Shown: positions 1,558-46,426 of the stretch, in pieces
Layout of the letters: each line of letters begins with the position of its first letter
Numbering within the stretch: position 1 is the first letter of the stretch
Virus record (IMG/VR): IMGVR_UViG_3300028654_000001
Span: 248,001 to 312,000 of that record
Length of the DNA: 64,000 nucleotides
Direction: 5' to 3' (one strand)
The notes under the pieces: model-generated
The model's input: only the letters and a program-made list of their open reading frames with translations
The model's database searches: none
What the model was told of the DNA's origin: nothing
Program-made: the position numbers and the translations under genes

Positions 1558-2865
1558 ATGGCATCGGACCTCCACCTAATCCAACGGGTAGCATCAAAGT
1601 GGTCGAGTAAGGATTTTGAGTCAAGGTATGCCCGCCTTCTGCTTTCGATGTCAAGGGATCAAGCCAAAAAGGTCCTTGGTTTCCCTCCAAATGCTAACCC
1701 ATCAGAAAGTGAAATTACCAAGAACTATAGGGAGTTGGCTCTTAGGAACCACCCTGATCGTGGTGGTGATCTTGACACAATGGTGGAGATCAATGTTGCC
1801 AAGGATGTGCTGACCGGAAAGGCTCAGGAACGTTGGCAACCAGAGCCGAGCCCAGAGCGTACTAAATACAAGCCACCCCCACGTCCAGAGGCAGCCTACA
1901 CAGTGAAAGGGGTTCCATTTGCCGCCGCTTGGTCTGGAGCAGGGGTCCCAAGTGGCACTGATTGGAAGTTCGTCAGTGAGCAAGTTAGCTTGTACAGTAA
2001 GGGTTTCCCAACCCAACCTGGTTGTGTACTGTATGGGCAGACAGCAACACTCCATGTTTTCTGTGCAATCTTCAAGCAAGAGTCAACTGATAAGGTATGG
2101 CCCCCTACGGATTCTGATGGGAAGGTCTTTGAGGTTGAAGAAGGGTGGCGAGCTCAAGTTCTGACGGCCCCTATTGCTAAAGATCTAGATAAGATCGCCA
2201 TTAAGTACATCAAACAGATAGTCTCAAACTTCCCAGGTCCGGGCCCCAAAGATGGGAGTGTCCCAAAGAAGTATCTCCTCTATCCTCAAAGTATGGGAAG
2301 TCCAACGGAAGCCTATATCGGGAAGATCCCCTATCGTGGGAAGTTTGCCTTGAAAGAGGTTCTGAGACTTGCTGGTCTTGTTAAAGTTGATGAGGAGAAA
2401 GCTAAAGACACACCGGCTATTATTGAATTCTGGGGTGTCCAAAATAAGCAAAAACTACGAGATAACCCGAGAGGTTACTTGGGTAGTAGCGGTGACTTCT
2501 TCCTATCCATTGATGGCAAAGAGGTTAAACTAGAAGAGGGGACCTGCGAGAAGATCGTCAAGAGTATGTTCTTGGTCTCAGCTCTTCGAAACTTCGAGTA
2601 TCGAAAAGTCTACCGGTTGAATCGCCTGAAGGAGGGTTCTCTCTTCAAAGGCGGAGCTTACTACGCCTTCTTGACTCTTTTCGAGAGCCTCACTGGGGAA
2701 CCTTCTTGGGTAAAGGATGCCTTGGAAAAGAACGTAAGGATCTTCAAGCCTGAAGATCGAACAGCTTCAGTCTTCTTGAACCTCTGCTCTGAGATGTCTT
2801 TGAAGCAAGCTTCAGTTGTTACTGGGATCCCTATGCGTGAGCTAGTAGAGATGGTCTACGACTAA
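1558..2865 (+). CDS. DnaJ (J-domain) containing protein
   Basis: AKKVLGF...ITKNYRELALRNHPDRGGDLDTMVEINVAKDVL contains the HPD motif. I prefer start ATG 1558 (MASDLHLIQRVASKW) to 1465, which overlaps the divergent gene. Confidence 0.75.
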   Translation: MASDLHLIQRVASKWSSKDFESRYARLLLSMSRDQAKKVLGFPPNANPSESEITKNYRELALRNHPDRGGDLDTMVEINVAKDVLTGKAQERWQPEPSPERTKYKPPPRPEAAYTVKGVPFAAAWSGAGVPSGTDWKFVSEQVSLYSKGFPTQPGCVLYGQTATLHVFCAIFKQESTDKVWPPTDSDGKVFEVEEGWRAQVLTAPIAKDLDKIAIKYIKQIVSNFPGPGPKDGSVPKKYLLYPQSMGSPTEAYIGKIPYRGKFALKEVLRLAGLVKVDEEKAKDTPAIIEFWGVQNKQKLRDNPRGYLGSSGDFFLSIDGKEVKLEEGTCEKIVKSMFLVSALRNFEYRKVYRLNRLKEGSLFKGGAYYAFLTLFESLTGEPSWVKDALEKNVRIFKPEDRTASVFLNLCSEMSLKQASVVTGIPMRELVEMVYD

Positions 2866-4538
2866 TCATCCAAGTCAACAGCTACCGGAGCCCCTAAGGC
2901 TGACTTCTCTACCTCAATCAAATCAGGGGGAACTTTCCCTGAAGCTGCAACCATATCAAGCAGCTTCTTGATCATCGGTAAGTCCTGTTGGTAGCTCGCT
3001 GAGTGATTCGGGCTCGGAAGCCTCAGAACCATGTACAGAGATTCTGACAGAGTCAGCTCGAGAGGGTCCTTCTTCAGGATCAGATACGACGCAGGCCCTA
3101 TCCCGTAGATGTCCGGGCCGTATTCCACGACGTTGAGATACATCTCGATGATCTTGTCCTTGGTGAACGAGCTCTCTAGGGCGACCGTTAGGATGGCTTC
3201 TTGGATCTTCCTTCCAATGGTTCGGTTCCTGTTCAGCCACAAGTTCTTCGCCAACTGCATCGTGATGGTGGAGCCGCCGCGGAAGAACCTTCCGAGCTTC
3301 AAGTTGTCCTTCAAGCTGTTCTCGATGGCCTGAGGGATGAAACCCCTGTGGTAGAAGAACGCAGGGTCCTCTGTGGTCGTGAGGGCTGTGGTCATGTTCG
3401 GACTGATCATCTGATAGGGAGTCCAGTCCGGTGCCGATGGTCCAGCTTTACGCGTGAATGGCTTTCCATTTGGATGGTACGCGGTATAGGTGAACTCACC
3501 TGAGAGATCCTTGATGAACTTCGGGGGCGGACCGGTTAGCTTGCAGCCGTTTGAGATCTTGAGTTTCACATCCGGAAGAAGCCTCAAGTCGAACTTGAAG
3601 TCTCCGACTAACCTCACCTGTTTGAGTGGATCGATCAGCATCTCTTCTGGGATAGACTCGAGCCAGTGCTGGCAAGAGTCCACGCCCCAGACATGCTTGC
3701 CTTCCCAGTTGAAGTAGATTGTCGACCACTTACTCTTCACCCAAAGGTTAGGCATCCCAACCAGAGGATTCTTGGGGTCGATAGCTGTGACCTCTACATA
3801 CCTGAAGGTGACTGGCACCGGGTAGAATCTCTTGTGCTCCACCTGGATGGACTTCGCCTTCGGGTAGATCAGGCCATCGGTAAACTCAAGGGCTAGCCCT
3901 TCAATGGTAACCGGTGGGTAGTAGATATTCCCGAGCTCGAGATGCTTGGTTTGAGTATTGAAGGAACCCTCGGTGAACTTGACCTTGTCCAGCTTGAGGA
4001 AGTCACTGATCTTTTGGAAGGCGTCTGGTAGACCAACCCAACCACTGGCAACAGTGGCTACCTTCGACTTGAAGTCGTAGTGCACCCCCTCTACCATAAC
4101 CAGACCGTACTTGGTCTCAATCTTCCCCGTGGCGGCCCGTGCCTCATTCGAATCAAAGGAGGCCTTGTAGAGTTTAGCGGAGTCCAGTCCCCTGTAGAGC
4201 TTCACGGTCAGGTTCTTACCGGTAACCTTGAAACCGGAACCGTTCTTCTGATCCTTTGAGTCAGAGGTTATGTCGACAAGAGCCAGCCCTCCATCAACCG
4301 CAATCGTCTTGGATTTTCTACAGGCAATTGCAGAATCGAAGGTACCCTCGATGTTGTGGATCTTTACGTTAACCCTCTCAAGCCTAACACAATCGAGGTT
4401 GAGTAACTTGACTGACCCAACCTCGACGCCTGGTTTCAACCCGTTGATGTAATGCTTCAGAATTGAAGGAAGAAGCCAGCCAAGTAACAGCAGGGTTACT
4501 GGTATTGAACCGATAATTAGCCATTTCTTACGTAGCAC
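2862..4538 (-). CDS. membrane-anchored peptidoglycan transglycosylase (GT51 family, MtgA/PBP-TG-like)
   Basis: N-terminal TM helix; GT51 motifs EDPAFFYHRG, GGSTITMQLAKNL, RKIQEAILTVALE, KDKIIEMYLN; no transpeptidase domain. Confidence 0.85.
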   Translation of the reverse strand: MLRKKWLIIGSIPVTLLLLGWLLPSILKHYINGLKPGVEVGSVKLLNLDCVRLERVNVKIHNIEGTFDSAIACRKSKTIAVDGGLALVDITSDSKDQKNGSGFKVTGKNLTVKLYRGLDSAKLYKASFDSNEARAATGKIETKYGLVMVEGVHYDFKSKVATVASGWVGLPDAFQKISDFLKLDKVKFTEGSFNTQTKHLELGNIYYPPVTIEGLALEFTDGLIYPKAKSIQVEHKRFYPVPVTFRYVEVTAIDPKNPLVGMPNLWVKSKWSTIYFNWEGKHVWGVDSCQHWLESIPEEMLIDPLKQVRLVGDFKFDLRLLPDVKLKISNGCKLTGPPPKFIKDLSGEFTYTAYHPNGKPFTRKAGPSAPDWTPYQMISPNMTTALTTTEDPAFFYHRGFIPQAIENSLKDNLKLGRFFRGGSTITMQLAKNLWLNRNRTIGRKIQEAILTVALESSFTKDKIIEMYLNVVEYGPDIYGIGPASYLILKKDPLELTLSESLYMVLRLPSPNHSASYQQDLPMIKKLLDMVAASGKVPPDLIEVEKSALGAPVAVDLDD

Positions 4539-4548
4539 CTTGGCACCC

Positions 4549-4555
4549 TACACCA
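4549..4555 (-). promoter_or_regulatory. YGGTGTA motif upstream of the GT51 gene
   Basis: TACACCA on +, 10 nt from GTG 4538. Confidence 0.5.
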
Positions 4556-4566
4556 ACTGGTGGGCT

Positions 4567-5076
4567 TCAGCAAGAAACATATGTACAAAGGTACAGCTTA
4601 ATATCCCGACTTGTATGATCAAGAGCGCAGATGACCTCGAATAGGATTCTCTTGATCTCGTCTAATCGATCTAAATCAACTGAAAATAGGTCATTACCTC
4701 GGTACTCACTGCATTCGTACTCCAACAACCGGTAACCAAGAACGTAGTTTGAGTTACGATCCCAGTCATCTCCGTTCAAAGTTGGGTCCACAATATGGAA
4801 CTGAAGCTTATTAGTAGACCCATCGCTAGTGTTCCACTCGTCAAACAGCTCGTCTGGGGTCTTCTTACCAAACTGTTTTTTGGAGAATTCCATGAAGGCT
4901 GGTTTGAAACTGCGAACCATTTGAGGCTCAAGCTTAGCCCCACACTTGGAGCAGAAAGGACCTCCTTGAGGCGGGTGACCCTTTGGGCACACCACAGCTC
5001 CTGGAAGGGTAATCACCAAGTCATTGGGGCTTAGGGTGGCCCCAATGACCAATCGTGGATAGTAACTTGCTCCCAT
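4567..5076 (-). CDS. hypothetical protein with a small Zn-ribbon (CPKGH...CSKCG)
   Basis: 169-aa ORF packed between neighbouring genes on the same strand. Confidence 0.6.
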   Translation of the reverse strand: MGASYYPRLVIGATLSPNDLVITLPGAVVCPKGHPPQGGPFCSKCGAKLEPQMVRSFKPAFMEFSKKQFGKKTPDELFDEWNTSDGSTNKLQFHIVDPTLNGDDWDRNSNYVLGYRLLEYECSEYRGNDLFSVDLDRLDEIKRILFEVICALDHTSRDIKLYLCTYVSC

Positions 5077-5083
5077 GAAAACC

Positions 5084-7501
5084 TCAGATCTTGATCTCGA
5101 CTTCTCTCATGTCGACTTTGCAGAGGAGATCAGCGCCTCCGAGCTCGAGAGTCATAAAATTCTCATCCAAAGATTTGAACTCTATTGGCCATATTTGCCC
5201 AACTATGATGGCAAATTTGATCTGGGCTATCTCTCGGATCTTCTTGCGGGTGACCGCAACAGCATCCTTGGCCTTCTTGTCGATCCACGCAGTAAAGGCA
5301 GCAAGCTTCTCCTCATCGGAGGGTGGCTTCCCATCCTGTGCATTTGAGACCACAGCCATTGTGTATTCCTTGGAGGCCAGCCACTGCTCGACCTCGGTCA
5401 ACGCAGGTACCAAGAGAGCCCCGCTCGTGGTTTGCTTCTTGGTAGTACCGATCTTCTTCCGAACCTCATTCACGGAAGGGAGCTTGGATAGACCGGCAAT
5501 ACTGACCTCGAGCTTCTTGGCTACATAGAAGTCAATTGCAGCCGCTGAGACTGTGTGAGGGGGTGAAAAGCCAGAATAATCGGTGAACCCTTGCTCCTTC
5601 AACCAATTAGCTATCTCGTCTCCATACGTGGCTACGAACCCTGGTGACTTCTTGGGTGGTATCTTTTCGTCCCTGATGTCTTTATAGACCTTCTGGGCTG
5701 CCCTGGACTTCTCGAGCTCCCACTGAGCCAGGAACAGGGCCTTAGCACTGGCGGCCTTGATCATCCTTCGATTGATTACAGGGAGAGCTCGGAGGTTGAT
5801 GACCCCGATCACGAAACCACCAGCCATCGAAAGCTTGGTTGGCTTGGCTTCAGCAGGGAGCAACTCAGAGAGCTTCTTGGCGGTTGCCTCTGTAACCCTC
5901 ACTGGAAGAGACTCCACGTTGACTAAACCATCCTTAACAATGGCGTAGTTACGGAAGATAAAGGTTTGGAATGACGTCGGAACCTTCCCCTTGAACTCAT
6001 CCTTGAGACGAGCTGAAATGTCGACGGTGCCGGTTTTCCTAACCCCAATCGAGATATTCGGAAAGTCCTCGTTGTAAACCAAGGAAGAGATTGGATAGCC
6101 TTCAGGGGCTGGATCAGCCACGAACTTTAGAGGTGCTGGCTTGGAATTAAGAAGAGTTGTCAGCTCCTCATTCAGCTTCTTGATCTCAGAGGCCTTCTTC
6201 TCTGTACCCAACTTGACCTTGATCTCATCAACTCTAGCTTGCTCGGCAGCAGTGAGGATCTCGTCTGCATCAATTCGACTACGGCCGATCTTTGAGTACT
6301 TGAACTCAGGGTGCTCCAACAGGATATGAGCTGACTCATCACTGGCGAGTAACCCAAGAAGATCGAGAACCGTATAAGCATCGTCATCAGGTACCTTCTT
6401 TGGATCCCAGCCCTTCGTGTAGCGGAGCTTGACATCAAAAGCCGCCGCCTTGGTAGAGTCCATGAAGTCGCTGTATTTTTGCTTTCCAAAACATGACGAA
6501 AACCGATCGACGAAGTCAACATCGGCTAGAGCCTTCAGGAACGGGAAGACTACGTCAGACTTCATGCGAACCGAGTAGAGGGACACGGCCGCATATGCAG
6601 CTGCTAGGGCAACATTATCTGCTTCACAAGTTGGCAATTGTGAGTTGCTTGTATAAGCTGCGGATACCTGACCAAGATCAAGTTTGTAAGTAGTTCCTTC
6701 CTTGTGAGGGCTAACCCTCCAGAACTCGGTTACGTCAGTAGGAAGGTTAGCTTTACCGTCCTCAACGGCGTAGGTTGTCAGTTCCCCATCGATCAGAGTG
6801 TAGACGAAGTTCCCGATGGATCCCCCAGACACCTTGACTTCTATCTTGGGTGCTCCAGAGAGCTTCTTACTCAATGAGGCCTCGAGAGCTGGTTCGTACT
6901 TGGCAAAGTGCTCAGCGAAGATCAGTTGACCTCCGGCCTTTTCTGCCATGGCCGTCAAGAGAGGCCTATCAGCGTAGTAACCATACTCCACGAAGGTTGC
7001 CGCCGATAACCCACCAGCTGCCTCTTCAACGGTACTAAGGATCTCCCCTCTTGGCCAGCAATTATCACACCCATCCGACATGAAGAACAAAGAGAAGATT
7101 GACCCTGACCTCTTGGTACTCACACGCTTGATGAGTGCTGAGACCTCCTGGAGGGGCTCCTTGAACCCGGTTAGCCCAATTGGCTGCAACCACCTGTCGA
7201 TGGCCTTGTTGACGTCCTGCAGGTCAGTGAGGGTCGCTACAGGCTCGGCCTCGAGCAGAGTACCGAACTGCCCTCTACCTGAAAACCAGATGATAGATAC
7301 CGTGTCATTAATCCCAATGAGTTTCGGGAGCTTCCTCTTTAATTGCTCGCGAATCTTCGGAAGTTCGCCATACATGCTGCCTGAAACGTCAATAACCAAT
7401 AGGTGATTGGTTGGTACCTCGACAGGCTTCGCCTTCTCTTTTGTCTTCTTCAACTCTTGGTGAACAAGAAACAGCCCGTCAGCAACCTGGTATGACAGCA
7501 T
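5084..7501 (-). CDS. von Willebrand factor A (VWA) domain protein
   Basis: MIDAS motif LVIDVSGSM, then T...LFFMSDG; about 550 aa of unassigned C-terminal sequence. Confidence 0.8.
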   Translation of the reverse strand: MLSYQVADGLFLVHQELKKTKEKAKPVEVPTNHLLVIDVSGSMYGELPKIREQLKRKLPKLIGINDTVSIIWFSGRGQFGTLLEAEPVATLTDLQDVNKAIDRWLQPIGLTGFKEPLQEVSALIKRVSTKRSGSIFSLFFMSDGCDNCWPRGEILSTVEEAAGGLSAATFVEYGYYADRPLLTAMAEKAGGQLIFAEHFAKYEPALEASLSKKLSGAPKIEVKVSGGSIGNFVYTLIDGELTTYAVEDGKANLPTDVTEFWRVSPHKEGTTYKLDLGQVSAAYTSNSQLPTCEADNVALAAAYAAVSLYSVRMKSDVVFPFLKALADVDFVDRFSSCFGKQKYSDFMDSTKAAAFDVKLRYTKGWDPKKVPDDDAYTVLDLLGLLASDESAHILLEHPEFKYSKIGRSRIDADEILTAAEQARVDEIKVKLGTEKKASEIKKLNEELTTLLNSKPAPLKFVADPAPEGYPISSLVYNEDFPNISIGVRKTGTVDISARLKDEFKGKVPTSFQTFIFRNYAIVKDGLVNVESLPVRVTEATAKKLSELLPAEAKPTKLSMAGGFVIGVINLRALPVINRRMIKAASAKALFLAQWELEKSRAAQKVYKDIRDEKIPPKKSPGFVATYGDEIANWLKEQGFTDYSGFSPPHTVSAAAIDFYVAKKLEVSIAGLSKLPSVNEVRKKIGTTKKQTTSGALLVPALTEVEQWLASKEYTMAVVSNAQDGKPPSDEEKLAAFTAWIDKKAKDAVAVTRKKIREIAQIKFAIIVGQIWPIEFKSLDENFMTLELGGADLLCKVDMREVEIKI

Positions 7502-12172: not shown

Positions 12173-12636
12173 GCTCTCCTGTAGGGCATCCTGTAGCTTC
12201 GCCGACGTCTCACTTGGGGCTCTGCTGCCTCAAGTGATTTCGTTGCATCCTTCAATACCGCTTCGAAAGTTATATCCTCTTCGTAGCTTAGCCCGTCGTC
12301 ATCCGGGAAGCTGAAGTCCACCCCTGTCCCGTCATCCCCGATGATCAGGTACCGAGGGTGAAGTCCTTCATGAACCTCACGATGACATCTACTACACAAG
12401 AGATGGCACTTGTCTAACTCACTTCTGAGAAGTTCTATAGAAGCTAGCCGGTCGGAAATGTTGTATTCCTTCTCTAGTGGATTTGCATGGTGAAAGTCAA
12501 ATGCGCTAGGAAACCCCGTGTAGCCACAGATCTCGCATTTCCCACCCAGGTAATCCACAGCCTGTTGACGGAGCTCGCGTCTGCGGACACTGGCCTCGTG
12601 TCTCAGAACCCAAGCGGTGTCTTCATCAGTGTACAT
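12169..12636 (-). CDS. HNH endonuclease
   Basis: GGKCEICG...FDFHHANP...ELDKCHLLCSRCHREVH. Confidence 0.8.
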   Translation of the reverse strand: MYTDEDTAWVLRHEASVRRRELRQQAVDYLGGKCEICGYTGFPSAFDFHHANPLEKEYNISDRLASIELLRSELDKCHLLCSRCHREVHEGLHPRYLIIGDDGTGVDFSFPDDDGLSYEEDITFEAVLKDATKSLEAAEPQVRRRRSYRMPYRRA

Positions 12637-29070: not shown

Positions 29071-31446
29071 TCAGGCTTCAGCAGCGGCCGGAGAAATCTC
29101 CCCCCGAGGGGGTATGTCAGCAGGCTCCCGCTCTCGCAAGGTAATCATACAATCCCCACCATTGACGGCTTGTTTCGTTACAACAATCTTTTCAATGTCA
29201 GGGTTGTTTGGAGCTTCATAGGAGATCTTCCTGGTTGCTTTCTCTACAATCGAACGCAGAGCCCTGGCACCCGTTGGCTTCTTCTTAGCCAGAGTGGCGA
29301 TCTCGGTGAGAGCTTCTGGATCAAATTCAAGGTTGATCCCATCCATTCTGAAGAGGGCCTGAACCTGTTGCACTATACTATTCCGTGGTTTCACCAAAAT
29401 CTCGACTAACTGTTCTTCTGTTAGCTCGATAGTACTAGTAATTATAGGAAGGCGTCCCATCATCTCAGGTATGATCCCAAAGTCCAGAACATCTTGCTCT
29501 ATAACCTCAGTATAACCACGGGTTTTATCAACTTTTTCCTTTGCTACAGCCCCAAAACCCATGCTGGAACTCTTGTTCAACCTTCGAGCAACAATCTCAT
29601 CAATGCTAGCAAAGGCACCCGCGCAGATGAAGAGAATGTTCGTAGTATCCACCAAGTCAAAGGTCTGCATCCCGGCGCCAGCCTTACCCATTCCACGAGG
29701 GACTGCCACTGTCGACCCCTCGAGGAGCTTGAGGAGGGCTTGCTGAACACCCTCACCAGATACATCCCGGTACCCAGCTCGGTCACGACCGCTACCCCTG
29801 GCGATCTTGTCTACCTCGTCTAAAAACACGATTCCCCATTGAGCACGCTCCACATCTCCACCCGCATCTAATATGAGACCCTGGATGAGAGTCTCCACAT
29901 CAGCCCCAACATAACCGGCTTGTGTGAGGGTGGTTGCGTCTCCAACATGGAATGGAACGTTCAGCATCCGAGCTAACGTCTCAAAAATATGAGTTTTTCC
30001 AGTGTTATGGGTAACAGTGAAGTCGTCCAGTAGGTAGCGGTGGTCCCCATCTAAAACAAATCCAAAGTATTCCTCAGCCGGCATAGTTCGAGTCTTGAAT
30101 CCAATCCTGAGAACATTTTTACTAGACTGCCTCTCAGCTGCCTTCTTACGAGGTATTCTAGTAGGGACTTCAGAGGTACTTCCGGATATGCACATCCGAT
30201 AGTAAGCCCCTACAAATCCTGTTTGACAACTCTTTGTACAAGGTTGCGGGTAACAAGCAAAACCAAGACTCCTAGTAATGAAGGTTAGGTCCCCCACTAA
30301 GGTTTTCGACTTGTTTACGAAGTCAAAGCAACTGCATTCATCGAGAGAACCATCTGTATCGATTAACCCTGCTAGGATCTCTAACCGATCTTTCCTAGAT
30401 GCTGTTTTGTAACAATGAGGTATGAACTTGTTCTCTCCAGTAACCCTAAGTAAACCTAGGCCCTCTAATGCTTTTGCTATTGGATTCTGAGGCTTACCGC
30501 ATCCTGGCTTGTCTGGGTTGGGGGAGTAACTATCACTCTGGGTCAAGTAATAAGTTGGGCACCGTTCCCCATTAGAATCATTCGGGGATAGGGTTAATCC
30601 AAATTTAGCAGCTTGCCTCTCTAGCTCTGCAAGTATCTCTGGGTCATCTGTAGTCACACCTGGGGTGCCTCCTAATGAACCGTCACCTAGTAGGATACCT
30701 AAGAAGTAAGGGTCAATAGGGAGTTCAGTTGTAGTAGCGGTAAACTCAACTGGTACCCGGAATAACTTGTGAACCGACTTCCTAGTTCTAGACCAAGATA
30801 GCCAATCCATTAGGGCAACGTCAGAAACATCATTAGCAGGGCGGTACCCTGATCCACCATTGTATCCAGTACGAACAAGAGTAAGGATATGACCCTCATT
30901 AACTACCCAGGGCTCGCCCTTAGTTGGAACAATCTCAACCATCCCACTAGTACCCCGATGTAATTCAAGTACATTGCGAGGGGTACTATCTGGACCCATA
31001 AGCTGATCACCCACCTGAACATCCTCTACAGCTTTTAGGGTCCCATCGAACATCAGCACAAGCTGACCTTTTTGGTGGCACCCGCTCGGCCCTAGAAACA
31101 AAATATTGCTTTTCCTAATTTCCACGGGTTTTGACCCGTCAGTCGGTTGCTCAGTAGCCCACTTACGACGTTTGAAGTGGTTGTAGACCACCGTGGAGAT
31201 GTCAATCTTGGCTTGCTCTTGTCCAATCACAAATTCATCCAAGTGAGCTTTGATCTCAAAGGGCTTCTTAAGAGGTTCTTCTTTCTTAGCCTCAAAGCCA
31301 CCCTTTTCAGCACCAGCTTCAAGAGAGGCAGCAGCCTGTACAATACATCGATTGCAGATCGATGGCCCCTTCTCTGGATTTGCTACAACGAGGTTCTTAA
31401 CCTCGTTTCGGGGGCGTCCGCAAAAGTCACAGGTAGTTACTGCCAT
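29071..31446 (-). CDS. clpX: ATP-dependent Clp protease ATP-binding subunit ClpX, containing an intein
   Basis: Zn-binding CDFCG...CNRC; spliced Walker A GPSG|TGKT; AGYVG pore loop; FLDEVDKI; RDVSGEGVQQALLKLLEG; MGF loop; GARALR. Confidence 0.92.
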   Translation of the reverse strand: MAVTTCDFCGRPRNEVKNLVVANPEKGPSICNRCIVQAAASLEAGAEKGGFEAKKEEPLKKPFEIKAHLDEFVIGQEQAKIDISTVVYNHFKRRKWATEQPTDGSKPVEIRKSNILFLGPSGCHQKGQLVLMFDGTLKAVEDVQVGDQLMGPDSTPRNVLELHRGTSGMVEIVPTKGEPWVVNEGHILTLVRTGYNGGSGYRPANDVSDVALMDWLSWSRTRKSVHKLFRVPVEFTATTTELPIDPYFLGILLGDGSLGGTPGVTTDDPEILAELERQAAKFGLTLSPNDSNGERCPTYYLTQSDSYSPNPDKPGCGKPQNPIAKALEGLGLLRVTGENKFIPHCYKTASRKDRLEILAGLIDTDGSLDECSCFDFVNKSKTLVGDLTFITRSLGFACYPQPCTKSCQTGFVGAYYRMCISGSTSEVPTRIPRKKAAERQSSKNVLRIGFKTRTMPAEEYFGFVLDGDHRYLLDDFTVTHNTGKTHIFETLARMLNVPFHVGDATTLTQAGYVGADVETLIQGLILDAGGDVERAQWGIVFLDEVDKIARGSGRDRAGYRDVSGEGVQQALLKLLEGSTVAVPRGMGKAGAGMQTFDLVDTTNILFICAGAFASIDEIVARRLNKSSSMGFGAVAKEKVDKTRGYTEVIEQDVLDFGIIPEMMGRLPIITSTIELTEEQLVEILVKPRNSIVQQVQALFRMDGINLEFDPEALTEIATLAKKKPTGARALRSIVEKATRKISYEAPNNPDIEKIVVTKQAVNGGDCMITLREREPADIPPRGEISPAAAEA
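30004..31080 (-). mobile_element. intein with LAGLIDADG endonuclease (359 aa) in the ClpX Walker A
   Basis: Begins CHQKG, ends THN followed by T; LGILLGDG and LAGLIDTDG. Confidence 0.9.
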
Positions 31447-36933: not shown

Positions 36934-37267
36934 CTGACAACCATTTTTGACCTGAATACCTACCGAGAGGGCTGCCCTAGCTGACAACCGCTGCTGGCCT
37001 GAGCACCAACCGTAAGTACGTGGCCAAGCTATAGAAAATGACGAACTGGAGCCGTAAGGCTCGATGCTGAAGACATCGAGCTCTTGCTGACAACCGCTGC
37101 TGGCCTGAGCACCAACCGTAAGAGCTTGCTGCGTTCTTCACCGGTCTCAGGCCGTCGACTGACAACCGCTGCTGGCCTGAGCACCAACCGTAAGGGCCTG
37201 AGCACCAACCGTAAGCACACTCGGCACCCATCTGACAACCGCTGCTGGCCTGAGCACCAACCGTAAG
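36934..37267 (-). CRISPR. degenerate CRISPR-like mini-array, 36-nt repeat CTTACGGTTGGTGCTCAGGCCAGCAGCGGTTGTCAG (minus strand)
   Basis: Identical repeats at 36981-37016, 37087-37122, 37159-37194 and 37232-37267; 21-nt partial repeat at 37195-37215; 7-nt remnant at 37052-37058; degenerate terminal repeat at 36934-36969 (26/36 identical); unique spacers of 16, 36, 28, 35 and 11 nt. Confidence 0.8.
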
Positions 37268-37338
37268 TCCAGTCGTCATAAACCAATAAACTCCTGTACT
37301 TGAGGCGTGCTTTGCGAGAGATTCCTTTCCTCCTCCTT

Positions 37339-38967
37339 TTAAAAGAACCTAAGTTGTTGATTTCCTTTAGGTTGTCTTTTAGAAGCGCCTGGGCGCTCGC
37401 GATGGGTACTCAGATCAGTAACGGGCTGGTAAGGCTCACACCCTTTTCCTGGCTCTCGTTCCCCACAAGCAGGTTCTACAACATCCAGGATCTCAGGCGC
37501 AACCGTTTCTTGGCCAGCTGATACAGGCGATCCAATCTGACTCCGGTTTCTAAGGCCGAAGCTGGTAGGTAACTCTCGTCCCTTGCCTATCTCGGATTCT
37601 TTTCCACTCAATGTCGCCTGTAAAAGCTTGTCCACTTCCGGCCAGGTTTTTAACGCCTGACCCACATTGAGCTGATCCCCTTCCACGCAAGTAGCGAGGA
37701 AAGCAGAGTATAAGTCTCGTTGAGACTTCAAACCACAGTCACACGAATGCCACCTCTGACTGAGAGACTTCTTCTCTATAGTCCCGCACCCATGGCAGGT
37801 TTGACTCAAACGAGTTGTTCTTGTTGAGAATTCAGTAACCTTTGAGGCTTTACGGCGAAGCTCAGCCATGAACATCCCAGGTGCCCGATACCCAACTGAT
37901 CTACCAAAGTTTTTCTGAAAAGATCTGTAAGATACTTTTTCTGTCCTAATATCGTCACCCAAAGTAAGGATTCGGTTAACCAAGTTACCTTGGAGGCTCT
38001 TTCGATGAGCTGCTTGCTTACGCTGAATAGATGATCTCTGTAAGGATACTTTGGTCTGTCTCTTGGAGATAACCCACTTCTTCGATCCCTTACGGATAGT
38101 TCCATCTGGGTTATAGTTGTTCGGATTATTGGATCGACGCTGACGATCCTCCTGTCTCTGAAGTTGGCGAATAGTCTCTTGTTTATCATCGAGTTCCGAA
38201 CAAAACTCCTCTAAAAGAGCTACTCCAGCTTGAGGAGCCACTACTGCAATAGTTGAAGGTCCTAAGTCTAACCCAACTACCCCGTGTCCAGGGAGGTTAC
38301 TTTCCTTTATGTATGGAAGACCCTCACAAACTAGTTGAGCATAGTACCGAAGTTTACTGCCAACTTGTCGACGGACTAGTTGAACATGTTTAATCCGGTG
38401 GGACAAACCATGGGCAGTAACCTTGTCGTTTGGGTCAATGACTGCTTTGATCCCCTTGAGCCCAAACCAATCAATATGATCCTTCTTCCATTTGACGCCG
38501 GAGTTGCTACGACCATCAATACAATTAAAAGTTCCTTTCCGTAAGAAATGTGGTCTACCACGTTTACTAAAGCTGTACCCCTGAACGATTTTGAACTCCC
38601 GAGAGGCAATAGCCATCATCGTGGAGGCGTCTAAATGACCGTCACTATTGAGCCAAGAATGAGTTAGATTAGCAGTAACCCAGTTATGAAGGTCAAACTC
38701 TCGAAAGTTAAATTCCTCATTCAACTGATTAAAGGTCTCGAACCTGGTCTTCGATTCTAATGAGCCCCTACCACCCTTTGGGAGTTTTATAGCAGTTCGG
38801 TATGCCTTGGATTCCTTCATCAAGTCCAACCGTTTGAGAGTCTCTGTCAAGCAAGCATTACCAACCATCCGAGCGACCTCAAATCGAATAGCAAGGATTC
38901 GCTCATCCCTAGGCGACGTAGCCAGAGGAAGCTCACAAACGAAGGTTGGACTTGAGTTACGAGCCAC
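37339..38967 (-). CDS. tnpB: TnpB/Cas12-like RNA-guided RuvC nuclease (542 aa)
   Basis: RuvC-I VGLDLGPS, RuvC-II IRTEKVSY, Zn finger CHGC...CDC and RuvC-III QRDLYSAFLA; all three catalytic residues present. Confidence 0.88.
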   Translation of the reverse strand: MARNSSPTFVCELPLATSPRDERILAIRFEVARMVGNACLTETLKRLDLMKESKAYRTAIKLPKGGRGSLESKTRFETFNQLNEEFNFREFDLHNWVTANLTHSWLNSDGHLDASTMMAIASREFKIVQGYSFSKRGRPHFLRKGTFNCIDGRSNSGVKWKKDHIDWFGLKGIKAVIDPNDKVTAHGLSHRIKHVQLVRRQVGSKLRYYAQLVCEGLPYIKESNLPGHGVVGLDLGPSTIAVVAPQAGVALLEEFCSELDDKQETIRQLQRQEDRQRRSNNPNNYNPDGTIRKGSKKWVISKRQTKVSLQRSSIQRKQAAHRKSLQGNLVNRILTLGDDIRTEKVSYRSFQKNFGRSVGYRAPGMFMAELRRKASKVTEFSTRTTRLSQTCHGCGTIEKKSLSQRWHSCDCGLKSQRDLYSAFLATCVEGDQLNVGQALKTWPEVDKLLQATLSGKESEIGKGRELPTSFGLRNRSQIGSPVSAGQETVAPEILDVVEPACGEREPGKGCEPYQPVTDLSTHRERPGASKRQPKGNQQLRFF

Positions 38968-43480: not shown

Positions 43481-46426
43481 CTACTTGGTGGCCTTCTCTG
43501 CTGCAGTAGCCGAGATTGTCTTGAATTGAGTTGAACGACCCTTAGAAGCAAATCTGGCTCGGATACCGTCCCCAGATTCCTTGTCGAACCCTACCCAATC
43601 AATGATATTATGGATCTCATCAGACATAGTCTTGATGATACGGGGCCGCCGCGTTAGGTCCTCCAGAAGGATCTCATAGTCCAGACCCTTGCACTTTGCA
43701 TTGAAGCTTTTGACCATCGAAGCTTCAACAGCCTGTTCGATCTCACGACCTACTAGACCATCAGCTTTCTCGGCCAAAGTAGCTAGGTTGAAGTTGGATA
43801 CATCTTGCGAGAAGTTCTTTGCATGGATCTTTATGATATCGATGAGGGTTTCCTCATCAGGGATATCGAAGAAGAACCTTTCTGGCATCCTGTTGACCAT
43901 CTCCGCGGGCATGGTCTTCAGGGAGTTGGCAGTCATCACCAAACAGGCTGGAGCATTAGATTCTTGGGTCCAGGTTGAGAGGATACCCAGCAAGCGAGAG
44001 GTGGTACCCGCATCTGATTGAGCCGATGAATCCCCACCGGATAGGCTCTTCTCAGCTTCATCTATCCACATAATGCAATTATGTGTGATCAATCCATTTG
44101 CAATAAATGAATGAGTGTCCTCACCCTCACAAACCAAGTCATAAACATCTTGAGTCCCAATGGGTTCAATGCTCTTCACCTGTACCCACCTACAATCAGC
44201 CTCAAGAATACGCTTGAGCTCAGATCCGCTAGACCCGAACTTCTCAATGTAGTTAATGAGATGACGTTCACTAACTGGAACTCTACCACTCTCATAAGAC
44301 CAGGTAACCCCAGACGAAGCACCTAAATCTGAGAACTTGGTACCAGACGCCTTTCTGGCCTCATGTAATAGTTGACCACAAGCAAACCCTGAACCTCGAT
44401 CAAAACCAATAGATGAAGAACTAATTTGTGTGGCCTTGACACTCTTTTCAACAAGGTACTCCCTAATAATTCCGGCTAAGTGAACAGCTCTACTACCGGT
44501 AATCTCCATTGAAGGGAAGTCAAACTTAGAAGGTATTACCCCCAGTGATTGGATTAGTTGACGACCCAATAACTGACGCTGAGCCCACATCTTCGGATGT
44601 TTGACAGTAAGAGCGATCTTATTACGGCCAATACATCCATCAGCATCAATCCACCCCGCAAGGAAAGCAGCTCGTACCTCCGGTGGTGCTGTCAAGATAT
44701 GCTTACGTGCTTCTCTGAGAAATTCAGCTGCTAACTGATTTGTAACTAAAGATGTCCAACAGGTTTTGAAAACTGAATCTTCAGTTAGTCCAGTTAGTAT
44801 AGGATCCTTAGAGTTATTCTCATGACGTGTTGCTTGAAGTCCAAATTGATTGATTAACCCGTGCTCAAAATAGGAGAGTAACCCCTCAGACGTGTTAACC
44901 AAACCAATTCCGTCATTAGCGCCGATGAAGCCATCACCCTCAAGTATACCTAGAACCCAACCTAGTTCTGTAGACCAAACCCTTGGGAGCTTTGGTACAA
45001 TGGCATCCCGAAAACCGCCACCCCCCCTACGAAACTCCATTCTTCCCTGGGCAGCTTCATAATTACGCATTCCAACTGGATGGAACCTAGTGCAATCTGA
45101 ATCCCCGGGATACTTGGCTATAGAAACCGCCATCATATCCCCAGGTAAAAGCTCGTCAGTGCTGACCCAATCTGGTAACCCACCTCGCATAATATAGTGG
45201 AGGTGGTTTTCTGTAGCGTTCAAGTAGTAACCATTAGCAGCATCAATACGGAAGGCTTCTGCTTGACGACATGTGATAGCACTCACCCGGGTTGAACCCA
45301 ATCGAAGTGTCTTTTCATTCCAACATTGAACGGAAAGATCAGTGGTTCCAGACAAGGACTCTTGCCATAAAACACCAATTGGTTTTGAAGTCCCATCTGC
45401 AAGAGTGACCTCGGTCTCTTCCGTCACGCATGGGGATACCGACTCCACGATCCTCAGAGCCCGATACAAGTTAGCTTCGGACTCACCCACTGCAGAGTTT
45501 CTAAGTTTTCCCATCTCGAACTGAATGAGAGGGAGCTTCCATTCTGTGGCAAGAGCCTTGGCTGAAAGTGACTTACCACAACCATAAACCCCCATGAGAA
45601 GGACCCCGCGGGGTGGTACCAAACCGAATGCCTGCCCCTCTTCAGTCCAACAAGATTGAGTACTACGTGCCCATTCTTTGAAGCACTCGGCCCCACCAAC
45701 CGAGTCAAAGCTAACTTTGCTCGAGTCGACGATCTGTACCAGATCGGTTTTCTTAATCTGGTTCCGCTTGTACTTACTAATCAAGACCGGGTCTACACGC
45801 TTTGGATCTACGGAGTCCTTCTTGGTTCTCACCACTGATTGAGTGATGGCAGCCTCTACCTCAAAGCTAGTAAACCCACGGAATAACTTGCCGATATTGG
45901 AGGGCACAGGTGTCTGAAGTTGCCTACAGAAATCTGTAACAAGAGTAGTCAACTCTTCTTCCTGGAGCCCCTTAGTGTCAACGATCTCAAAGTACCGAGC
46001 AAGCTTCTCTGGAATGACTCGCCGAGTGCTCACAAATATAAGGCACTTCACAACTCTGAGATCCACATGGAGTTGATGGATGATGTTCAGAACACGCCGG
46101 ACAGCTTGTTCATCTCGAAAGATCCTTTCAGGATCAGTGAAGATGTAGAAGTGCTCCTTGTCTTTCGGGTCATCCTTGTAGACCTGAGTAAGAGCCTCAT
46201 GGAGCTCGCGTGGAGTAGCCTCCGTATGACTCCTTTGAGTCCAATCTCTAGTCAGATCACCAATCTTCTTCAACCCGAGGCACCAATTGTAGACCCATGT
46301 TCGGTCTTCATGCTTATTCATCTGGAGTTGGAAGTCTTTGATGAAGTTATCCTCTTCATCGGTGACTACATAAACCAGACGGGTAAGTGCCCGTAGGTGA
46401 TGAACCATCTCAGCATTCAGGGTCAT
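43481..46426 (-). CDS. Ycf46-like AAA+ ATPase containing an intein
   Basis: PPRGVLLMGVYGCGKSLSAKA, VGESEAN, spliced SP|CIMWIDEAEK, TAN and RFFFDIPD motifs. Confidence 0.85.
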   Translation of the reverse strand: MTLNAEMVHHLRALTRLVYVVTDEEDNFIKDFQLQMNKHEDRTWVYNWCLGLKKIGDLTRDWTQRSHTEATPRELHEALTQVYKDDPKDKEHFYIFTDPERIFRDEQAVRRVLNIIHQLHVDLRVVKCLIFVSTRRVIPEKLARYFEIVDTKGLQEEELTTLVTDFCRQLQTPVPSNIGKLFRGFTSFEVEAAITQSVVRTKKDSVDPKRVDPVLISKYKRNQIKKTDLVQIVDSSKVSFDSVGGAECFKEWARSTQSCWTEEGQAFGLVPPRGVLLMGVYGCGKSLSAKALATEWKLPLIQFEMGKLRNSAVGESEANLYRALRIVESVSPCVTEETEVTLADGTSKPIGVLWQESLSGTTDLSVQCWNEKTLRLGSTRVSAITCRQAEAFRIDAANGYYLNATENHLHYIMRGGLPDWVSTDELLPGDMMAVSIAKYPGDSDCTRFHPVGMRNYEAAQGRMEFRRGGGGFRDAIVPKLPRVWSTELGWVLGILEGDGFIGANDGIGLVNTSEGLLSYFEHGLINQFGLQATRHENNSKDPILTGLTEDSVFKTCWTSLVTNQLAAEFLREARKHILTAPPEVRAAFLAGWIDADGCIGRNKIALTVKHPKMWAQRQLLGRQLIQSLGVIPSKFDFPSMEITGSRAVHLAGIIREYLVEKSVKATQISSSSIGFDRGSGFACGQLLHEARKASGTKFSDLGASSGVTWSYESGRVPVSERHLINYIEKFGSSGSELKRILEADCRWVQVKSIEPIGTQDVYDLVCEGEDTHSFIANGLITHNCIMWIDEAEKSLSGGDSSAQSDAGTTSRLLGILSTWTQESNAPACLVMTANSLKTMPAEMVNRMPERFFFDIPDEETLIDIIKIHAKNFSQDVSNFNLATLAEKADGLVGREIEQAVEASMVKSFNAKCKGLDYEILLEDLTRRPRIIKTMSDEIHNIIDWVGFDKESGDGIRARFASKGRSTQFKTISATAAEKATK
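44078..45430 (-). mobile_element. intein with LAGLIDADG endonuclease (451 aa) just before Walker B of the AAA+ ATPase
   Basis: Begins CVTEET, ends THN followed by C; LGILEGDG and FLAGWIDADG. Confidence 0.9.

Follow-up and report, generated by a model that had tools for sequence, protein, structure and literature searches.

The locus described here consists of a gene for a TnpB-family nuclease and, directly behind it, a short array of 36-nt direct repeats. It occupies positions 36934-38967 of a 64,000-nt stretch of DNA, itself positions 248,001 to 312,000 of the IMG/VR record IMGVR_UViG_3300028654_000001; this whole stretch is called the window, and coordinates without further specification refer to it. 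The record is a contig of 512,571 bp which holds both the nuclease gene and the repeats, and its source is a huge phage. A preliminary description made from the letters of the window had proposed a TnpB-type nuclease carried by a large phage together with its own mini-array of CRISPR repeats, and the size of the contig and the phage-like neighbours of the locus agree with the phage part of this proposal.

The nuclease gene (37339-38967, minus strand) is an open reading frame (ORF) of 542 codons with a GTG start codon. The source database gives a version of 509 aa begun at an internal methionine; we consider the 542-aa form to be the right one because the relatives align with the N-terminus from about residue 5. 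The protein is a TnpB-type RuvC nuclease of the large IS200/IS605 TnpB family. The RuvC triad, D234, E343 and D418, which had been described as intact, is invariant across the family alignment, and when PDB sequences were searched with a profile, E343 and D418 aligned with the motifs RuvC-II and RuvC-III of ISDra2 TnpB. A zinc finger of the form CxxC...CxC is present and its cysteine motifs are invariant in the family; the marks of a TnpB, a D/E/D triad split by a zinc finger together with the TnpB fold, are all found. In profile collections the protein matches a PHROG transposase family (E 7.5e-33); the NCBIfam guided_TnpB model matches with E 4.5e-19 at 69 bits, which is below its curated cut-off of 100, and the Cas12f1-like TNB domain of Pfam matches with a score under the gathering threshold.

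The AlphaFold (AF2) model of the protein has a predicted local distance difference test (pLDDT) value of 69.8, with residues 5-460 modelled confidently and residues 461-542 disordered. A disordered C-terminal tail is what would be expected when its DNA is kept for the sake of an RNA. The top Foldseek matches of the model are the TnpB structures 8iaz and 8h1j (ISFba1 and ISDra2), followed by Cas12f, while LaTranC, an effector of a kind discussed below, comes 15th, after the TnpB structures, and was not matched in the profile search of PDB sequences. Weaker structural matches are 9j09 (Cas12n, E 5.8e-4), ShCas12k (E 1.3e-3) and CasLambda (E 0.07). A homologue search in which 8,000 word-sharing candidates were scored gave 3,422 proteins at E <= 0.001. 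The best 120 of these are 47-57% identical to the window protein, except for the window's own protein and one at 83% identity (P0002); they are about 515 aa long, are often labelled putative transposase and often come from contigs only about 2 kb long, which is usual for multi-copy elements. In a tree the window protein and P0002 share a long branch within a clade of Chloroflexota-type IS605 TnpBs.

The array begins 71 nt behind the stop codon of the nuclease gene, and this gap (37268-37338) is a putative leader. Four exact copies of the repeat start at 36981, 37087, 37159 and 37232, where shuffled sequences are expected to contain none. Read along the gene strand (minus) the order is as follows. 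Repeat R4 (37232-37267), which starts with CTTAC and ends with GTCAG, is closest to the gene and is followed by a unique stretch of 16 nt, Sa (37216-37231), and by a 21-nt partial repeat (37195-37215), which corresponds to the 5' part of the repeat, abuts R3 and is a tandem duplication. R3 (37159-37194), the 36-nt spacer Sb (37123-37158) and R2 (37087-37122) make up the only canonical repeat-spacer-repeat unit. Then comes a unique stretch of 70 nt (37017-37086), in which 28 nt containing a hairpin of 8 bp precede a vestige of the repeat start, 7 nt long, and a further 35 nt, then R1 (36981-37016), and 11 nt further on a degenerate terminal repeat (36934-36969) which agrees with the others in 26 of 36 positions and keeps the GGTTGTCAG end. 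The four identical repeats, the partial copy and the degenerate repeat were all as first described; the irregular spacing had gone unmentioned there. The hairpin in the 70-nt stretch (37059-37086, minus strand) is perfect and G+C-rich, with the arms GCTCGATG and CATCGAGC, and stands just before the 7-nt copy of the repeat start.

All four repeats end with GTCAG on the gene strand. The preliminary description had noted an end-to-end fold of the minus-strand repeat; such a fold is indeed predicted, with 13 pairs of which 4 are G-U and an energy of -8.6 kcal/mol, but it is not above chance (z = -0.02; 98 of 200 shuffles fold equally well), and the repeat hairpin was dropped as evidence because it folds no better than shuffled sequence. 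The repeat matches none of the CRISPR-DR families of Rfam, nor Rfam at large, and gives only chance-level matches in plasmid and phage collections; within IMG/VR the exact repeat is confined to the source contig. A 100-aa ORF running through the array (36977-37279, minus strand) was considered as a gene and rejected, as it reads the identical repeats in three different frames, and it has no homologue among 5.8 billion proteins.

Relatives at about 55% identity have stayed mobile, as elements of the IS200/IS605 insertion sequence type. Among them are intact elements which have tnpA, TTAC as target site and a right end with a conserved TCAG terminus, and in 8 contigs a 54%-identical relative stands directly after a Y1 tnpA gene. 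The preliminary description had regarded homologues in intact IS200/IS605 elements, with the repeats being duplicated transposon ends, as speaking against its proposal. Such homologues exist; of the repeats it can be said that their ends resemble transposon ends. The Nitrospirota metagenome-assembled genome MFD03044.bin.1.139 carries a single-gene element in more than 25 copies (L008 and no fewer than 25 further loci). The 11 copies which we aligned are near-identical, 1.65 kb long, with TTAC on the left, the right end GGTCAG (...GGGGAGTGGTCAG) and a subterminal hairpin at both ends; this single-gene element has been active recently and has no internal tnpA.

A search for right ends matched 43 loci from several phyla. 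These have a near-invariant right-end hairpin, AGAACCCCC.GGCTTTAGCC.TGGGGAG, followed by 1-3 nt and then the terminus, and the stop codon usually lies within the loop of the hairpin. It should be noted that the search pattern itself required a terminus of the form [GT]TCAG; in the multi-copy alignments, which are free of this constraint, the right ends are GTCAG and in one copy GTCGG. A covariance model (R1) was built from the last 180 nt of 17 relatives borne on insertion sequences, and the consensus structure of these elements has 28 pairs, 18 of them with compensatory changes. This conserved structured 3' end is, judged from covariation, the omegaRNA of the family. In one relative (L021, 2950-3077) the last 30 nt of the right end are present in two copies that lie 93 nt apart, the second of them within a longer perfect palindrome; a miniature derivative element is one possible reading of this, a right-end duplication at its first step another.

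The same covariance model finds an omegaRNA-homologous region inside the 3' end of the phage ORF (37389-37584, minus strand) with 57.5 bits and E 1.6e-15. The body of the omegaRNA and its helices align, and the terminal right-end hairpin is replaced by a local skip of 29 nt; a MAFFT alignment agrees in keeping the body and leaving the terminal hairpin unmatched. No left-end hairpin was found upstream in the window, nor a right-end one, with the model that finds both in the relatives. An element with end hairpins, a TTAC-type target site and tnpA is thus not what the phage carries. Since the left end is absent, the terminal hairpin is lost and the start codon of the gene lies only 28 nt from the upstream phage ORF, the phage copy is to be regarded as a stranded copy and not as an intact element. 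A weak sigma-70-like promoter match (37596-37624, minus strand) is placed closely upstream of the point where the omegaRNA-like region begins, its position being what recommends it; it is the one such site found, and this is no more than in shuffles.

Within the region where the terminal hairpin was lost lies a segment which is complementary to the whole repeat. The repeat RNA was compared with the 533 nt upstream on the same strand, using a complementarity score in which a Watson-Crick pair counts +2, a G-U pair +1, a mismatch -2 and a gap -3. The best site, a predicted anti-repeat at 37396-37433 (minus strand), scores 40 with 30 pairs covering all 36 nt of the repeat, as compared to 27.4 +/- 2.8 for 300 dinucleotide shuffles, of which the maximum was 38 and none reached 40. 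When both strands of the window were searched (128 kb) the anti-repeat was the top site other than the repeats themselves, the next ones scoring 38, 36 and 36. It starts at CTTAC, the counterpart of the conserved CTTAGAAC junction of the family, which is the expected position of the 5' arm of the lost hairpin. In cofolding calculations the heterodimer is favoured by about 16 kcal/mol, with repeat positions 1-29 paired to the anti-repeat.

These features resemble TranC, a kind of effector which derives from TnpB, goes with a small array, lacks adaptation genes and has its guide RNA split (Jin et al., 2025, Cell 188:6283, as relayed in PMC13565253 and PMC13639567). In TranC the terminal stem of the omegaRNA is, by the same accounts, divided between a tracrRNA, the trans-activating CRISPR RNA, and the repeat of the CRISPR RNA (crRNA), which is called functional RNA splitting (PMC13565253, PMC13639567). 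A tracrRNA with an anti-repeat derived from a split omegaRNA is predicted computationally here as well. We believe on balance that the huge phage carries a TranC-like system, probably of independent origin, in which an IS200/IS605 TnpB became stranded in the phage genome, and judged from its sequence the stranded TnpB apparently functions, or did so until recently, as a minimal effector, type-V-like and of the TranC kind. An independent origin is probable because the closest relatives (55% identity) have remained mobile elements. A tracrRNA-like RNA, composed of the old omegaRNA body and then the 38-nt anti-repeat, would be encoded in the 3' end of the ORF, and the downstream array would be transcribed in the direction of the gene. 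Each 36-nt repeat would pair with the anti-repeat, so that the ancestral terminal stem, formed in cis, is rebuilt in trans, and this would place the sequence 3' of the repeat as the guide. The RuvC site would then cut DNA matching the guide beside a short 5' motif. The suggestion of a TnpB-to-Cas12 intermediate fits these findings: the omegaRNA body is retained, its hairpin is missing, the anti-repeat stands in that place and the repeat ends are like right ends.

The spacer Sb matches in 36 of 36 positions a site in the same phage about 215 kb away (about 500.7 kb on the contig; L110, positions 12480-12515), and the match ends exactly at both repeat edges. The clean 36-nt insert speaks for a true CRISPR-type array which was once given a spacer by an integrase provided in trans. 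The target is on the sense strand of a gene whose product, about 150 aa long and uncharacterised, has 119 representative homologues; neither the protein nor 10 of its homologues gave a match in Pfam or PHROG. The 5' flank of the target, in spacer orientation, is CCTTT, which is T-rich like the protospacer adjacent motifs (PAMs) of type V systems and unlike the TTAC of the family. As for the other unique stretches, the 16-mer Sa matches two unrelated IMG/VR contigs, which is the chance level for a 16-mer; the 70-nt stretch, searched as two 22-mers, has no match elsewhere in IMG/VR, and no spacer matches were found elsewhere in the window. The uses which the preliminary description had in mind, competition between phages or control of host genes, find no support here, the sole traceable spacer matching the genome of the phage itself.

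The minus strand carries 56 of the 63 ORFs around the locus. Neighbouring genes recognised by Pfam code for ThyX, a 5'-nucleotidase, a RecA-like ATPase and a nitrilase-family protein, all of them phage-like, and no close relative of the source phage was found among deposited phage genomes. The absence of tnpA and cas genes, which had been claimed for the whole window, stands for the 15 ORFs from 26.7 to 46.4 kb that were scanned with Pfam, among which neither cas genes nor tnpA (Y1 transposase) were found; in the PADLOC analysis of 61 ORFs it can be judged on the best 25 of 63 families, which contain only methyltransferases, SNF2-type helicases and a homing endonuclease. Tn7-like genes were not seen near the locus in the Pfam scans of the neighbouring ORFs. 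Two other assemblies of the same phage exist, one from a sister sample of the Joint Genome Institute (JGI), the other from a separate Logan run; in them the locus agrees base for base with the source contig or breaks inside R4, and no variation of the array was seen between the assemblies. Such identity shows a stable lineage and does not show selection. Among the other genes of the window are a ClpX-like ATPase gene with an intein (Hint domain; 29071-31446, minus strand), a second AAA ATPase gene, in which a LAGLIDADG endonuclease domain accompanies the intein splicing domain (43481-46426, minus strand), and several ORFs for which PADLOC gives strong matches, namely to DNA methyltransferases, type II or orphan (best E 2e-89), to SNF2-type helicases and to a homing endonuclease.

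The closest lineage is represented by P0002 and P0121, which are 83% identical to the window protein and come from the ENA contigs ERZ1426832, ERZ1426815 and ERZ1426844. Their setting is a different, phage-like one, after two Tad2-like (anti-Thoeris) genes and a uracil-DNA glycosylase (UDG) gene, and the nuclease gene is followed by a conserved 105-aa ORF and a papain-like peptidase. P0002 and P0121 keep the C-terminal tail including the codons of the anti-repeat. Their tails are longer, and the window frame read past its stop codon matches them up to 12 nt before R4. The next ORF called in this lineage begins 128-152 nt past the stop codon.

Arrays beside family members were surveyed in 80 viral loci. 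Mini-arrays stand directly downstream of the gene in L121 (7 repeats), L163 (5 repeats), L165 (9 repeats, ending with GAGGTTCGG) and L170 (5 + 3 repeats, ending with GTTGCCAG), and the repeat ends of the latter two resemble right ends. L114, with 3 I-E-like 29-nt repeats, and L117, with 5 repeats of 36 nt, have such arrays too. Placed on the tree, array adjacency needs at least 5 independent changes. In L117, a viral contig, the TnpB belongs to an apparently intact element (2528-4579) with a left-end hairpin and a complete right end, and the array (4595-4891) is 16 nt away. A chromosomal case is L051 (Anaerolineae, OZ241372.1), where a family TnpB lies between two arrays of I-E-like 29-nt repeats (400-1350 and 5670-6650). 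The hairpin of these array repeats (CCCCACAGG..GTGGG) resembles the end hairpins of the element itself, and the case hints that such elements may insert near hairpin-forming repeats of that type.

Several observations weigh against the TranC-like interpretation. Taken alone, the RNAduplex energy of the anti-repeat is not significant, since 22 of 200 and 13 of 100 shuffles were as good. The reason is that the G/U-rich repeat pairs promiscuously and large loops are allowed, and the energy was replaced by the near-ungapped complementarity score with dinucleotide shuffles described above; as the energy is not significant, the argument rests on the position of the anti-repeat and on the stricter score. 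By that score, too, the lead over the second-best site in the window is small (40 vs 38). The covariance model can alternatively align a right-end-like terminus, AGCGCCCAG, at 37397-37389, and an omegaRNA with a diverged hairpin might then act in cis. The unique stretches of the array are irregular (16, 36, 70 and 11 nt), and together with the truncated units and the partial repeat this suggests decay. No array-derived ORF was found in the P0002/P0121 lineage, by a protein-level search which is a weak test. L117 and L051 show that adjacency is not always coupling and can arise by insertion, which keeps alive the explanation of the array as a coincidental neighbour. Finally, a phage with an active nuclease and a compatible PAM should not tolerate a perfect self-match. 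The PAM could be incompatible, the nuclease could bind without cutting, the phage population could be polymorphic at either site, or the system could be dead; the self-matching spacer is left unexplained by every model considered here, the TranC-like one and its rivals alike.

The rival that survives best, although we think it rather improbable, is that a host-type orphan mini-array lies beside a stranded TnpB and works with Cas proteins of the host or as an RNA decoy. The two would then be neighbours because elements of this family land near hairpin-forming repeats, or because both belong to an accessory or anti-defence region. The survey speaks for this, in that relatives adjoin arrays of different types (the I-E-like 29-nt repeats of L051 and L114, and in L117 an intact element 16 nt off) and adjacency was gained independently at least 5 times on the tree; so does the lineage of P0002, whose gene adjoins the Tad2-like anti-defence genes. 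The clean 36-nt spacer, moreover, implies Cas1-Cas2, and as none was found in the scans that were run the source would be a host. What this explanation does not account for is that the best complement of the repeat in the window sits at the position of the omegaRNA terminal stem and that the repeat ends are like the right end of the family. The repeat itself also has no CRISPR-DR match in Rfam, reaches only chance level in plasmids and phages and occurs within IMG/VR on this contig only.

To a decaying relic we assign a slightly smaller probability than to the orphan array. TnpB and array would once have been coupled, or the array would have arisen from right-end duplications, and the array would now be eroding and without function, for which reason the self-match is tolerated. 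The perfect self-match speaks for this explanation, and the truncated spacers of 16 and 11 nt, the 21-nt tandem partial repeat, the 7-nt vestige and the degenerate end repeat, as well as the long branch leading to the window protein and P0002, are in keeping with it. Against it stand an ORF intact over 542 codons with all catalytic residues, four repeats which are 100% identical and an omegaRNA body that retains its helices. The locus is also identical across three assemblies, a sign of a stable lineage which does not imply selection.

A further possibility, in our opinion an unlikely one, is an independent and very recent TnpB-to-CRISPR transition, inside a huge phage and with nearest relatives that still jump, in which the self-matching spacer would direct binding or cutting of the phage's own gene, for regulation or genome processing and not for defence. 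Very improbable is an ordinary TnpB with an omegaRNA acting in cis, its diverged terminal hairpin ending near 37389 and the repeats being unrelated to it, for instance protein-binding sites or recombination scars: AGCGCCCAG at 37397-37389 does align to the right-end terminus and the 29 nt in between allow a small hairpin of 5 bp to be drawn, but the fixed guide past 37389 would have no target in the window or in L110, there is neither left end nor tnpA, and the repeat-bounded exact 36-nt copy of a distant gene and the complementarity of the anti-repeat are left unexplained.

Returning to the TranC-like reading, the likeness concerns an effector of roughly 500 aa derived from an IS605-type TnpB, a small array of 36-nt repeats on the same strand, the lack of adaptation genes and a guide RNA which is apparently split into a tracrRNA-like part and crRNAs. 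The differences are that the window protein is far from LaTranC, that its array is partly eroded and that the intact spacer matches its own genome. In published TranC systems an array comprises 3-20 repeats, each 32-38 bp long, and adaptation genes are absent; a phage-borne TranC, CauTranC9, is known (bioRxiv 10.64898/2026.03.27.714800). The effector kind is consequently not an undescribed one, as had been suggested, having been named in 2025 (Jin et al., as relayed by PMC13565253 and PMC13639567) and having one example in a phage (bioRxiv 10.64898/2026.03.27.714800). In Cas12n (type V-U4) the C-terminal tail is unstructured, and the tracrRNA is encoded by the DNA of that tail (bioRxiv 10.64898/2026.03.27.714800). 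The window protein is similar in that its disordered C-terminal tail and the tracrRNA-like region overlap, with a mini-array following downstream; the structural match is weak and the proteins are not close relatives.

With the TnpB-omegaRNA systems of IS200/IS605 elements (ISDra2, ISFba1) the phage copy shares the fold, the RuvC triad, the zinc finger and an RNA scaffold in the 3' end of the ORF, and they are its best structural matches. It differs from them in that the left end, the right-end hairpin and tnpA are all missing, and in being a single copy in a phage. Compared to ISDra2 TnpB the protein is about 130 aa longer, and an array takes the place of a single guide derived from the flank. 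Viral mini-arrays and solitary repeat units reportedly borrow or block Cas proteins of the host (Medvedeva et al., 2019; Camara-Wilpert et al., 2023). They are likewise short arrays in a virus without cas adaptation genes; their repeats copy the repeat of the host, whereas the window repeat has no known host counterpart and appears to relate to the RNA of the neighbouring TnpB. Huge phages also carry the compact type V effectors CasPhi (Cas12j) and CasLambda, which are not known to need a tracrRNA. The setting is alike, with a single small RuvC effector and a small array in a huge phage; the protein families are others, CasLambda being a marginal structural match. The preliminary description had further likened the repeat end to that of type V-K (Cas12k), putatively of the GGTTGAAAG type; the right-end terminus of the family itself is the better-documented match.

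Should the coupling between the two RNAs prove not to be real, what is left is a stranded TnpB of the ordinary kind with an orphan mini-array next to it. If it is real, the locus would be an unusually young example of a transposon nuclease becoming a CRISPR effector. The mobile relatives at 55% identity would allow a direct comparison of before and after, in which the ancestral terminal hairpin maps base by base onto the duplex of repeat and anti-repeat. The phage would also provide another compact RNA-guided nuclease, of roughly 500 aa, with a defined two-part guide. Phages have been suggested as vehicles of the transition from TnpB to CRISPR (bioRxiv 10.64898/2026.03.27.714800), and that the host of this event would be a 512-kb phage bears on that idea.

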